Assembly: GCF_022045235.1 (NCBI RefSeq)
Contig: NW_027266343.1
Coordinates: 13,330,001-13,394,000, forward strand
Length of the DNA: 64,000 bases
From: Haliotis cracherodii
Lineage: Eukaryota
Direction: 5' to 3'
Shown here: piece by piece, positions 1 through 38,172 of the stretch
Position numbering within the stretch: position 1 is the stretch's first letter
Layout: every line of letters starts with the position of its first letter
Translations under genes and position numbers: made by a program
The notes under the pieces: model-generated
Databases searched by the model: none
The model's input: only the letters and a program-made list of their open reading frames with translations
Told to the model about the DNA's origin: nothing

Positions 1-88
1 ATGAAATACAAAACATTTCATTGTGTTACCTAATTTCAGTTAACATCCATCCAACCATTCAGATGTTTTCTACAACCATGAGTCTTAT

Positions 89-566
89 CCAGCTAATCCA
101 GATCATCCTAACATACTCTTGATAAATCTGCTTACTTTACACCTTAACCCAGCCAGTGGGGAATCCACGCAGAAAGTGTGCCTGTATTAAATATCTTGTT
201 CCCAAAGTAAATACAAATTGTCCTTAATTGTCATTCAACTGACGACCAAACCTACTTGAATTCTGTGTTATCAATACATGGACCACCGGCACATTTGATG
301 TCCTACCTGGTGATTACCACGGGATAATACCCCTCACACCCTCGTATGGGCGGCTCCATATCTACCGGGGACGCAAGCGATTGTACATTCACACCAAGCG
401 CACTTTCTTACTGGGTAAGCGTTTAACTATGTTTTCAATAGCCATTATGAATAGAGAAGGTTAACTGGATAATGAAACGATTAACGAGTGTTTTCATTGT
501 TATGTTAATATGTTGTTTTAGTACAGGTATATAAACAGGAGAGTGCACAGGCATTGTATCATTCGA
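89..566 (+). promoter_or_regulatory. Conserved Cdc25 upstream module with TATA and Inr (copy 1)
   Basis: GGTATATAAA at ~526-535 and TCATTC at ~559. Colinear blocks TAATCC, GGGAATCC, CTTAATTGTCAT, CATTTGATG, TTCACACCAAG and AACGAGTGTT are shared with the other copies. Confidence 0.7.
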
Positions 567-638
567 CTTCAAACTGTTCAACTGTCTAACTTACATCTCT
601 TAGCATTACAGAAACAATTTGAAAATACTTGTGTCATA

Positions 639-2530
639 ATGTCACGAAAGCAGATCACGGTAACTATTTATTGATGGCGACATTTATACTTTTTTGACAA
701 CTATAAGGCCGGCGTCTTATGTTCATTTAATCATAATTCGAAAAAAACCCTAAGGATGAAGACAATCATATGAAAACTATTTCTTTTCATCTTTCAGTTT
801 TCCAGTGACCTGTCAAATAACCTTGAGTGTCCGACTTCACCGGACGTTTTCATCAAGAAGAGCCTTGTTTTCGATGATGACAACTCTCTAGACAGTGGCT
901 TTGAATCTCTTGGCAGTGACATCGAGGTTTGTTACATTTCATTTAACACTATGGGCAGTTCTTATTTGCAGAAATACTTAGGTATATAAATACTATACTG
1001 TAAATGCTTGAAACAAGCAAAATTAATATTTGACAGAAATATGTATTTTCATGAACACAATTCTAATAAAAATAAAACATTTGATGATATGTTTCTTCAT
1101 CAGGTGTCGCCACTACCTTTGGATCACAGGAGAACTGGTTTCCATGGAAAGAGGAAGTCTCTTTTCGGAGAAAAGAGACGACGTGATGACGATGACGATG
1201 GGGATCATATTCTAGCTCGGCAGATGAAGAAACTTAAAACAACCAATGGTGTCCCCAAAGCCCAAACAGAAGTCACGTCAGAGGTTATGAAGTCAGCCGT
1301 CGACAAGATGGAACAGGGCACTGATCTCATTGGTGATGGCTCACAGGTTAGTTGGAGACTAATTATTTCATATTTATCAATCAAATACATTCTTTAGAGT
1401 TAAAAGATGCACGCTGATTTTGAAGATAACGAGGTAACTGGAAAACAACTTCAAATTCATATCAATAACGTTAGTGTTTGTGTTCCAGAATCATTGCCTT
1501 CCAACTATTCAAGGAAGACACAAGGATCTCAAGTCTGTGGCTCCACACACAGTTAGTAAGCTTCTGGCAGGACAGTACGATGACGTCATTTCCAGCTACA
1601 GGATCATCGACTGTCGTTACCCATATGAATATGAAGGTGGTCACATTGAGGTATGCTACTGTCTTTAGATAAACAATACAACCATTGCCATGTAATATTG
1701 TTCATAGAATAACACATTCAGAGCATATTGATTGTATTTTGCCTAACATCTGGTAACAGTCTAAGTTTACATTTGACCAATTATTTACTTCAGGGTGCCG
1801 AGAACCTTCACAATGAGACTCTGATAAAAGGCTTGGTGACCAGCCTACAAGAGAAGGACTCCATTCAACGGAACATCCTGGTCTTCCACTGTGAATTTTC
1901 ATCAGAGAGAGGCCCGAAACTGTAAGTATTTTGTCAGATCACTTACTTGAGACACTGAACGATTCTAACATTACGATAACGATGCTCAGTTTAAACGAAA
2001 ACTCAAATAAGCATGTATATCTTAGCCTCTTGTTTTAAAACGGTTCTCTGATACAGATTGCGCTGCCTTAGAAACCTTGACCGGAAGGTGAACAGTGACC
2101 GTTACCCTTTCCTCTTCTACCCGGAAGTATACCTGTTAGATGGTGGATACAAGGCTTTCTATGAACAACATCAGGTAGGTTGAGAAACGTTTGCAATTGA
2201 CAGGAGTCCCTTTTCAGCAAGCCTGACCACCCGATCCCGTTAGTCACCTATATTTAGTGTACATGTATACGTTTTTCATATATAATAAAGCAGAGTTACT
2301 TGTACTGTACTACTTTTTTGTAAAATTTTGTGTAATAATGTGTCTTTACAACTCTATTTCAGACTCAGTGCCAACCAAGAAACTACGTTCCCATGCTACA
2401 CCAGGATTTCTCCAAACAACTACGTCACTTCCGGGTGAAGTCCAAGTCGTGGACAGCAGGAGAGAAACAGAGCATGCGCAGTCGACGTCTCATAATAGAC
2501 ACGTCTCCGCTCAAGATGCCTCTTTGGTAA
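639..2530 (+). CDS. cdc25: Cdc25 (string-like) phosphatase, copy 1, 7 exons, ~322 aa, intact
   Basis: GT-AG exons 639-659, 798-926, 1104-1346, 1489-1650, 1794-1921, 2057-2174, 2363-2530 join in frame. Motifs: [58 protein letters not shown] at ~2706. Confidence 0.93.
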
Positions 2531-35373: not shown

Positions 35374-35454
35374 GGTGGAATCGGTTTCTTCGAGGGAATT
35401 CTGTAATGTTAAGAAATCGTTGTATGATGGTGTGTACTCGTCAAGTATTAGACG

Positions 35455-35995
35455 GCGAATGATACTGAATCTGCTTACTTACTTACTTACTTTGGAGATT
35501 TAACGTGCGCTTTCCGACTGATGCGTATTTCGCACACGGGCTGAATCTGTCTTATCCAATGTTTATATATCTTTCTAAAACAACATATTTACATAACAAA
35601 GGCAACACTCGTTGATCGATTCAGTAACGAATTGATAACACATTGGATATACTTGGCAACGGAAACAAAGATAAACAAAATATTATAATAGTGATCTTGG
35701 GCTTGGTGTGAAAGTACTATCGCTTGTGCGTCCAGTGGATATTTAGCGACCTATACGAAGTGTGAGAGGGATTATCTCGGCTTAATCACCAGGTAGGACA
35801 TCAAATGTACCGTGCACCCATGTTTGCACAATACATGGTTTAGATCGTTCTAGTCGTCAGCTGAATGACAATTAAGGACAATTTGTTTTAACTGGCGGAA
35901 CGAGGTATTTAATTGGGACACACTTTGGGCACGGATTCCCCAGCTAGCGGGATTAAGGTGTATCGTAGTCAGATTGATCTGGATTAGGTGGATTA
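35455..35995 (-). promoter_or_regulatory. Upstream module of copy 6
   Basis: Same ordered motifs; TATA at ~35562-35569; Inr displaced by a 76-bp insertion. Confidence 0.65.
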
Positions 35996-38172
35996 TATCA
36001 ACACGTGTAGATTACGCTGTTGATACTTAAGAAACAGTAACATAAAATAGGAAACCCCTTGGGTATCTGAATATCTTCAGCTTCAGAAACCGCCGGGCAA
36101 AAGAAAGTACACACCCATGTTTGATGGTGGCTAAAATGAAACAAACAAGTTTTGGGCGTGAAGTGTCCAGTGTTTCCGCGACTGTTTTCAGCCTAGTAAC
36201 GTTTCGATAGCGTTTGTGATACTTTTGGTCACATCCAATTTTCAAATCTGTACTTTCTTTCGCCTGGTGGTTTACATTGCAAGATAACTTCACTTTTGGT
36301 TTCCGTTTAAACGATGATTTATTCTTAACACATGTACTTAAACCATTAAAATGTAATATTCGTTGATTTTAAATTGAAACAATTCATATTTATCCAACAT
36401 TAAAGTAGTTCCGTTTATGTACTTAGACATGATTTAGTGTGGTACGTTAATAGACCTATTAAAAATAAAATTGTCTAATACATTTTGAATGATCATAAAT
36501 CATATTTTAATTATCATAACCTCCCCCATCAACAAACACATGGAAATAATGCTATAGACCTATTTCTGGTGTCGTCCCCCGCGAGATATGGATGGACTAT
36601 TGCTAAATATTGCGGCGTAAAACTAACTAACTCACTCACTCACTCATAACCTACCAGTCAGCGATGCAAATACATTCGGTTTGTAGAAGGCAGTTTAACC
36701 ATCAGTAGATATAGCCCCGACATTCAAAGCAAATAGAAATGTGAGACGACTGTCGCATTGACACTGAGCCTTGAGAGCGGAACAGCGATGAGCTGGTGGT
36801 GTCAGCATCCTCATCAATAGATTGCCTTCCACCAAGTACCGCACCTATGACTATGTGAGATGAAGGCGTCAATAATTACTGTTCGGACAGATGCAACTCA
36901 GAACGAAGACAAATATATGCCATGACATCTTAATTTTATAGAAAAATATTTGATTAATATTTTTAATGTTACATGTTTGACTTTACACAAATATATGAAA
37001 CTGGAATCTGAAACGAAATAGATATGTTCAGTTAAGAGAAATTTAATCATTTGAACCCACAGAGAACGTTTCGGAGAATGTGAAGACTCCCGAACACTGC
37101 AGCCTTCTGCAATACACAGATTGTCAGAAGGGCTGTTTTCCTAGAAGCAAACACGGGTACTCTCCCATTGCCAGTCTACAGATTAAGAGGTACCAAACCT
37201 AAGGCACCGAGAAAAATGGGGAGTCGGACAACTTGTTATTGAAATATATTTGATTAATATTTTTAATGTTACATGTTCGACTTTACACAAATATATGAAA
37301 CTGGAATCTGAAACGAAACAGATATTCCCAGTTAAGAGAAAATTAATCATTCTTTTAACTGGGTGGTCAGCTGGGTTCGGAAGTCAGATACACTGTACTT
37401 GTTGTTTTCATGTGTTTTCTTTCACGTATGGTTTTCGCAAGCTTTTAAGATGTCAAATATATGAAAATATTCTTAAACTTAGGGACAAAAGAAGGTTTAC
37501 CGAATTTGCTTTTTTATTTAATTCCCAATTGAAAGAACTATTGTTAAATTTGTTAATGTCGATTTAACCATCACTCATTCCTGCAATTGAAAAATGTAAT
37601 CTGTGTCTAGGAAATTGTGTGTAAAAATAGCGAGTGAGTTAAATTTTAAATCGCATCGGCAATATTACAGCCATATAGCGCTTTGATCAAGGTATTCAGA
37701 TCAGGTGTAAAAATAAATTGGTAACACTAGGTTAAGGCTAGGGTAACAAATGAATTTGCAACCACGCGCCCCCTGCCATGTTTGAAATATAAATTATTGC
37801 CGACAAAAGCGACACATTTCTTTTTCAAGGATAAGATGTTTAAGATACACATCATCAGTTGTGTAGCATGCGAAAAACTATGATTTGATTTTTAAAAGTT
37901 TTGAATCAAAATATATGTAAAACATATTTAACTAATCAGAATAATTCTTTGAGTGTTGACTAAGTGCCAATACAGTTAATTTTTGGATACAGTATCGATA
38001 ACTTAAGATATTTTCAATTAAATATAAGTTTGTAAGATATGATAAAGTCAACTGAGCGGTATAGTTTCTTTTTCCTCTTCATCAGTTTATGTACTTCATC
38101 AGTTTATGTACACAACTCTGAATGTATATGAAGATCTATGCTCAAACTCGATATCATATAAAAACACAAATA

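Follow-up and report, generated by a model that had tools for sequence, protein, structure and literature searches.

A tandem array of short Cdc25 genes with a common promoter and K-box in the black abalone, Haliotis cracherodii

The stretch of DNA analyzed here, hereafter the window, comprises 64,000 nucleotides (nt) of the genome of the black abalone, Haliotis cracherodii (C80:13,330,001-13,394,000), and contains a cluster of short Cdc25 genes that we confirm to be real and transcribed. Self-comparison and exon mapping agree on nine related Cdc25 units within positions 1-36000, in the same condition as given in a preliminary description (four intact, one with a Cys-to-Arg change, one pseudogene, two relics, and one orphan promoter). 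Five of these genes are full length, four of them (A, D, E, and F) intact and the fifth, C, open in frame but with an active site reading HREFSSERG. The remaining units are a broken copy, B, and three minus-strand relics, R1, R2, and R3. The large units recovered by self-comparison are A (1-2900), B (7321-7855 and 9354-10794), C (11308-13987), D (18776-22148), E (29026-25537), and F (35979-33074), to which smaller fragments are added. The array was suspected to be larger than the window, and indeed eight further copies (U1 to U8) and one relic lie upstream of the window edge, over ~66 kb. The whole array consists of 14 Cdc25 copies in ~102 kb of piece C80, 6 of them inside the window, in mixed orientations and at irregular spacings of 2.6-9 kb.

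RefSeq represents the array as 14 consecutive “M-phase inducer phosphatase-like” proteins (XP_071089151 to XP_071089164), and our models of D, E, and F coincide exactly with RefSeq proteins P0190, P0123, and P0122, respectively. Several RefSeq models at the array begin at an internal Met or merge neighbors, as does P0125, which merges A with pseudogene B. Most C-type and U-type genes (P0127, P0130, and others) are begun at an internal Met in RefSeq (211 amino acids [aa]), with loss of the degron exon. Full-text literature searches returned no published description of an abalone or gastropod Cdc25 array.

A six-frame reading of unit D exposed exons bearing Cdc25 signatures, including ...FRVKSKSW, and homologous exons are present in all units; exon borders of D were set from the sequence and then projected onto every copy (Table 1). 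AG/GT splice sites and exon lengths are all conserved across the 13 full-length copies, 12 of which have open frames, with upstream copy U3 carrying one stop. In A, D, E, and F, the coding sequence is divided among seven exons and specifies proteins of 321-326 aa; their first exon, which was found by alignment of the 5′ regions, is only 21 nt long and runs from ATG to GTAAG. C and the upstream copies are without the first intron, and their products are of 308-311 aa. The full-length genes of the window span 1.7-2.4 kb from ATG to stop, with introns of 105-570 nt, as expected from the earlier estimate of genes of about 2 kb with short introns. E is the inverted partner of D, with 86.9% identity across 3.5 kb.

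As queries, protein searches had the exon at window positions 20149-20313, an open frame of a further abalone locus described below (L001), or the database proteins that equal models D, E, and F. The HCX5R signature is HCEFSSERG in A, D, E, F, and all upstream copies and HREFSSERG in C. Rhodanese (PF00581; E value of 9e-12) is the sole Pfam domain in P0122 and P0123. The structure of human CDC25B (1cwr) aligns over aa 123-307 (E value of 2.8e-54), with conservation of the Arg/Arg/Tyr residues that contact the substrate (R488, R492, and Y497 of CDC25B) and with a partner segment reading CRFIRERDRAVND--YP; the C-terminal tail (CEP..Y.PM.H..FR.KSKSW) also aligns with CDC25B. These features support the assignment of the array genes to genuine Cdc25, with a catalytic domain that looks competent. 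The long regulatory N terminus (Pfam M-inducer_phosp, PF06617) has no match in P0122 and P0123, although the long chiton protein P0184 does match. Judged from the predicted proteins, the array genes are a short variant of Cdc25, PF06617 being typical of the family rather than defining it.

The regulatory region ahead of the catalytic domain is ~120 aa long and contains a DSG-Phi-x-S degron, Ser-Pro sites, and a basic KRxR patch. The degron, which is of the beta-TrCP type and lies in an acidic, Ser-rich context, reads DSGFES in 12 of the 13 full-length copies, among them all five in the window, as had been noted for the open genes; in U7, it reads DSGVES. Because DSG degrons are also found in other abalone Cdc25 loci and in other molluscs, the motif is ancestral and not special to the array.

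About 550 bp ahead of the start can be aligned in all 13 copies, ending in a TATA box and an initiator (Inr). Within this region, the blocks CTAATCCAGATC, CCTTAATTGTCATT, GGATAATCCC, TTCACACCAAGCC, TTGTTATG(Y)(W)AAT, and GGTATATA and the TCATTC initiator are invariant. Invariant columns account for 26% of the promoter, with invariant runs of 11, 8, and 6 nt; in the introns, they account for 9-22%, with runs of no more than 4 nt except for one of 7 nt in the last intron. Five copies of the block TTGTTATGYWAAT are present in the window, where 0.02 would be expected, and all of them fall in array promoters. Upstream blocks resemble sites for K50-homeodomain (TAATCC, twice), T-box (TCACACC), and Sox-Oct (the composite TTGTTATGYWAAT) factors, identities that serve only as leads. 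A TATA/Inr promoter had been ascribed to every open gene. In A, C, D, and E, a GTATATA box lies 33-36 nt ahead of the TCATTC initiator-like motif; in the stretch 35460-35571 of F (minus strand), an insertion of ~77 nt with a (GTAA)n run brings the spacing to 110 nt. Because this insertion parts the TATA box from the initiator-like motif, F may start transcription elsewhere.

The K-box previously recognized in the 3′ untranslated region (3′UTR) is present as CTGTGATA, on the sense strand, in all five full-length window genes, 147-158 nt past the stop and 12-31 nt ahead of AATAAA (12-35 nt across the array copies). It occupies the homologous 3′UTR site in 12 of the 13 copies, in a UTR that is otherwise poorly alignable (20% invariant columns), and transcript contigs extend past it. 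The octamer is the exact complement of the UAUCACAG seed of miR-2, and the genome contains a mir-71/mir-2 cluster (L023; C2:13,773,730-13,775,165) in which a mir-71 hairpin and four (Rfam) to six (seed count) mir-2 hairpins, with mature sequences containing UAUCACAGCC, lie on a single strand. Elsewhere among the abalone Cdc25 loci checked, the K-box was found only in two of the four copies at 47 Mb.

Expression was assessed by mapping four RNA-like runs (X1, X2, X16, and X17, of which X1 and X2 belong to one study) onto window positions 18500-22700. Coverage in X1 and X2 is confined to exons and the first ~170 nt of the 3′UTR, falling to zero on the promoter and beyond ~21885, and exon-exon joints connect 19604 to 19781 (the degron exon and the next), 20985 to 21139, and 21241 to 21554 (the last three exons). 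X16 and X17 gave no array exon contigs over the same interval, and only an intronic short interspersed element (SINE) is covered. One contig is identical to D over 111 nt, a stretch with 5 differences in A and 9 in E, and further contigs carry A-type and U-type letters; because D-specific, A-type, and U-type variants all occur, several paralogues appear to be expressed together. Spliced contigs of several paralogues, told apart by copy-specific variants, were present in two of the four RNA-like runs, supporting that the array genes are transcribed and spliced as modeled, in only some runs.

The copies form four deep lineages (F; A/D/E; C/U8; and U1-U7), between which the pairwise ratio of nonsynonymous to synonymous divergence (dN/dS, or omega) is 0.23-0.27, with a bootstrap upper bound of ≤0.39. 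These values, well below the ratio of 1 against which the preliminary description would have set them, are low in the N-terminal and catalytic parts alike and support purifying selection on the coding sequences. Synonymous divergence (dS) between copies is 0.04-0.7 overall and 0.9-2.0 in the N-terminal exons. In a maximum-likelihood tree, the array is a Haliotis-specific clade in which F groups with proteins of H. asinina (P0004) and H. rubra (P0121), A groups with P0124 of the red abalone, H. rufescens, and the U clade goes with a second protein of that species; the red abalone also has its own D-like and E-like proteins. Because orthologues occur lineage by lineage in other Haliotis species, the array must be older than the split between red and black abalone and partly older than the spread of the genus. 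Since the C-type orthologues of red abalone (P0200 and P0201) retain the catalytic Cys, the change to Arg in C is confined to black abalone or to the individual sequenced. The view of the array as dosage amplified fits poorly with copies that are this old and diverged and whose separate lineages are matched by orthologues in H. rufescens, H. rubra, and H. asinina.

Further Cdc25 loci on C80 lie at 13.150, 13.164, 19.575, 47.25-47.29 (four genes), and 49.80-49.84 Mb (four genes), for a total of eleven genes (L007, L008, and L013-L022) that include two four-gene clusters. Among these, the gene at 19.575 Mb stands out by its much longer introns and may be the conventional Cdc25. An exon-wise search of the genome for the PF06617 region of a long canonical Cdc25 was without match, but its controls were silent too, so this negative is uninformative. 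A different kind of array occupies C3:42,764,037-43,421,918 (L001 and L002), where ~250 units of 2,639-2,651 bp are arranged head to tail over ~660 kb. Each of the seven units that were read contains a Cdc25-like gene of five exons, apparently intact, with an ATG of its own, DSGFGS, and HCEFSSERG, and the units are without a K-box; identity is 99.4-99.9% between neighboring units and 99.1% at a distance of 480 kb. This type of gene is present in H. rubra (P0002), and because the protein search returned no H. cracherodii protein of the C3 type, the C3 array seems to be unannotated. Black abalone has at least about 25 dispersed or clustered Cdc25 copies in addition to the ~250-unit array.

Annotations of bivalves and gastropods include short Cdc25 proteins (290-350 aa) in many paralogues, frequently with more than one on the same contig, and the same architecture and multiplicity recur in Argopecten, Mya, Mercenaria, Dreissena, and Haliotis asinina. 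The premise of the preliminary description that most animals have only a few copies of Cdc25 does not extend to molluscs, and the array is a newly resolved case of short multicopy mollusc Cdc25, which is already known as a kind. Compared with those of other molluscs, the window genes form their own Haliotis clade, and we know of no earlier description of their conserved promoter blocks and K-box. The array genes resemble human CDC25A and CDC25B in the Rhodanese fold, the HCEFSSERG loop, the Arg/Arg/Tyr contacts, and the tail (CEPxxYxPMxH...FRxKSKSW); the N-terminal part of the human proteins also contains a DSG phosphodegron, as do the abalone copies. The human regulatory N terminus is, however, 300-400 aa long, against ~120 aa in abalone, and the human genes are three and dispersed, against 14 tandem copies. 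In Drosophila (string and twine) and Caenorhabditis elegans (cdc-25.1 to cdc-25.4), paralogues are split among germ line, maternal supply, and zygotic timing, and their activity is limited by turnover of message and protein. These are sets of two to four dispersed genes, unlike the abalone tandem array, and we know of no tandem array, shared promoter, or reported K-box logic among them. The K-box itself (cUGUGAUa) is a 3′UTR motif of the Drosophila Brd and E(spl) genes and a target of the miR-2 family; in abalone, the exact 8-mer CTGTGATA is common to the paralogues, with one site per UTR, and belongs to a cell cycle gene. The early histone arrays of sea urchins consist of hundreds of near-identical tandem units used in cleavage, and only the C3 array (~250 units of 2.64 kb, 99.1-99.9% identical) is like them. 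The window array is unlike concerted dosage arrays of the histone or ribosomal DNA type, given its dS of up to 0.7, its mixed orientations, and its irregular spacing.

We consider the window genes to belong to a tandem family of 14 short Cdc25 genes (308-326 aa) that evolves by birth and death and probably acts in the period from germ line to early embryo. As read from their sequences, the proteins would activate Cdk1 by taking off inhibitory phosphates, and the common promoter would make the copies a coregulated battery with additive output. Message and protein would both be short-lived, through the miR-2 family and SCF-beta-TrCP, respectively, and the resulting activity would be transient. 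Its likeliest setting is the window from the germ line to the early embryo, including meiotic maturation and the rapid cleavages, with transcripts supplied either maternally or zygotically. This setting is suggested by work on a clam and an annelid: released clam oocytes give higher signals for six CDC25 or CDC25-like probes, in a study that also counts seven CDC25 genes in the oyster Crassostrea gigas (PMC4254928), and the maternal cdc25/string-like mRNA of Platynereis drops from >250 to <15 fragments per kilobase per million (FPKM) between 2 and 4 hours postfertilization (hpf) (PMC4974748).

Several observations weigh against this reading. The phosphatase activity, the beta-TrCP binding, and the miR-2 repression on which it draws are all predicted, and the RNA status of X1 and X2 is presumed, argued from their exon-only spliced coverage. 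Over the whole window, CTGTGATA occurs 7 times where 3.1 are expected, a count reached in 5 of 100 shuffles; because this count is not significant, the motif draws its weight only from where it lies and how well it is conserved. In the youngest copies, U2-U6, omega is 0.6-0.75, with a confidence interval extending over 1, and these copies are not distinguishable from neutral. When both regions are compared in the same gene pairs of the array, catalytic exons have a synonymous divergence of 0.3-0.4 and N-terminal exons one of 0.9-2.0, a three- to fivefold difference that suggests exon-restricted gene conversion, a process that may inflate apparent conservation. Finally, one copy has a stop (U3), one is without the catalytic Cys (C), and one is broken (B), and it follows that some redundancy exists and that decay is ongoing.

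The decayed copies B, U3, and C and the omega of the youngest copies, along with three relics, the chimeric nature of A, and the duplication of a 5-kb spacer (see below), are what would be expected if the copies were mostly redundant products of unequal crossing-over, drifting by birth and death with no dosage or timing role beyond that of a single Cdc25. We regard this as improbable, since four deep lineages have been kept at an omega of ~0.25, orthologues are retained across Haliotis species, the regulatory blocks and K-box are conserved, and several paralogues are coexpressed. That the copies are haplotype or assembly artifacts of one or two genes can be dismissed with near certainty, despite an assembly gap inside the region: the copies differ in sequence (dS of 0.04-0.7) and have their own introns, transposon insertions, and flanks, the distinct lineages have their own orthologues in other species, and contigs of separate runs carry variants of several copies. 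The concern raised in the preliminary description that copies might collapse to such artifacts was, on these grounds, rejected.

What remains to be weighed is when the genes act. The preliminary description cast them as an early zygotic battery of short TATA genes, turned on at genome activation to time cleavage and cleared by miR-2 and beta-TrCP. Their compactness, short introns, and TATA and Inr core promoter agree with this, as do the sample-specific expression, the conserved K-box alongside a genomic miR-2, and upstream blocks that we presume, as leads only, to be K50-homeodomain, T-box, and Sox-Oct sites. Yet the genes retain 5-6 introns, a TATA promoter may belong to a maternal gene as well as to a zygotic one, and Cdc25 mRNA is found in oocytes of a mollusc and as a maternal message in an annelid (PMC4254928, PMC4974748), and we find an early zygotic battery rather unlikely. 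Of its mechanism, the turnover half is plausible. Alternatively, the genes could be gonadal or maternal paralogues that serve meiotic resumption or spermatogenesis and are stored in the egg for the first cleavages, with the K-box used in clearance of the maternal message. The clam and oyster data (PMC4254928) and the clearance of Platynereis message from 2 to 4 hpf (PMC4974748) speak for such a role, and the occurrence of short multicopy Cdc25 across broadcast-spawning molluscs and the presence of expression in some runs and its absence from others are in keeping with it, but this support is drawn from other species and from unspecified paralogues. It is a serious possibility that falls somewhat short of an even chance, and we judge such a role to be no less likely than a zygotic, cleavage-stage one.

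The dosage of Cdc25 and its turnover determine when meiosis resumes and how the rapid early divisions are timed, and to our knowledge, the timing of early divisions in spiral-cleaving embryos is largely unknown. The cluster offers a natural set of coregulated paralogues in which promoter blocks, degron, and microRNA site are delimited and can be tested with reporters. It breaks, with other mollusc Cdc25 genes, the rule of few Cdc25 genes per animal, and it is relevant to annotation, as RefSeq truncates or merges several array genes. Hatcheries concerned with the gamete quality of black abalone, which is critically endangered, may find it relevant as well. We can speculate, with considerable doubt, that amplification has two tiers, in which the diverged 14-gene array, with its shared promoter (K50-homeodomain, T-box, and Sox-Oct-like blocks) and miR-2 site, would give a sharp, self-limiting pulse and the ~250-unit C3 array, of the sea urchin early histone type, would be the second tier; if true, the two tiers together would provide a burst of Cdk1 activator for the synchronous cleavages or the mass gametogenesis of a broadcast spawner.

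Table 1. Positions of Cdc25 copies, relics, and other features in the window
Feature	Position (nt)	Strand	Remarks
Copy A, whole	26-2711	+	Promoter 26-565, TATA 527, Inr 561
Copy A, coding	639-2530	+	7 exons, 322 aa, intact, HCEFSSERG
Copy A, 3′ end	K-box 2686-2693, AATAAA 2706	+	H. rufescens orthologue P0124
Relic R1	5175-6127	-	Last-exon remnant 5175-5244 (with stop) and decayed promoter-like stretch 5831-6127
Copy B, pseudogene	7321-10794	+	Promoter 7321-7855, gene remnant 9354-10794
Copy C, whole	11308-13826	+	Promoter 11308-11868, K-box 13801-13808
Copy C, coding	11947-13645	+	6 exons, 311 aa, splice sites intact, HREFSSERG (Cys to Arg)
Assembly gap (N run)	16590-16732	.	C-D spacer; SINE copy 16736-16994 on right border
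Relic R2	17367-17644	-	Promoter-like remnant; duplicate of R1 in duplicated spacer
Copy D, whole	18776-21900	+	Promoter 18776-19266, TATA 19229, Inr 19266
Copy D, exons	19330-19350, 19478-19606, 19783-20025, 20152-20313, 20858-20985, 21126-21243, 21552-21716	+	321 aa
Copy D, 3′ end	K-box 21875-21882, AATAAA 21895	+	RefSeq P0190 identical
Relic R3	22935-23139	-	Orphan promoter fragment adjoining Tc1/mariner element
Tc1/mariner transposase open reading frame	23438-24427	-	329 aa, HTH_Tnp_Tc3_2 and DDE_3; between D and E
Copy E, whole	25825-29026	-	K-box 25852-25845; RefSeq P0123 identical
Copy E, coding	28423-26011	-	7 exons, 321 aa, intact
Copy F, whole	32887-35995	-	K-box 32926-32919; RefSeq P0122 identical
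Copy F, coding	35373-33074	-	7 exons, 326 aa, intact
SINE, tRNA-derived	20433-20764 (D intron), 27026-27315, 16736-16994, 55324-55553, 58602-58969	.	One family

The promoter of pseudogene B is cut between TATA and Inr by a repeat-rich insertion of 1.5 kb (7856-9353). Its degron exon has a frameshift that turns DSG into DIG, the next catalytic exon is partly deleted, a donor site has disappeared, and nothing is left of the final two exons. The insertion contains internal direct repeats (8038-8216/8214-8392 and 8697-9041/9030-9361), and one of its open reading frames resembles the RNase H of a retroelement; a Pfam search with two open reading frames inside the insertion, this one included, gave no match.

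The array also bears the marks of a segmental duplication of ~5 kb, in which the spacer between A and B (2365-7857) corresponds to that between C and D (13480-19262); the duplicated segment begins in a gene's last exon and extends to the promoter of the gene that follows. Because of this duplication, copy A is chimeric, D/E-like at its 5′ end and C-like at its 3′ end, and its red abalone orthologue P0124 has the same chimera. The assembly gap lies in the C-D spacer, where it touches no exon and affects no gene model; the possibility that it falls inside a gene was rejected, the gap being intergenic, and comparison with R1 indicates that it could conceal only the last-exon remnant of R2.

The SINE family has very high depth in all RNA-like runs, and because the same insertion occupies the same intron of D and E, it predates the inverted duplication that produced these two copies. 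Beyond the array, tandem-repeat blocks occur at 51889-52501 (period of ~76 bp) and at 56351-57204 (period of ~72 bp), the latter within a stretch of 54% G+C.

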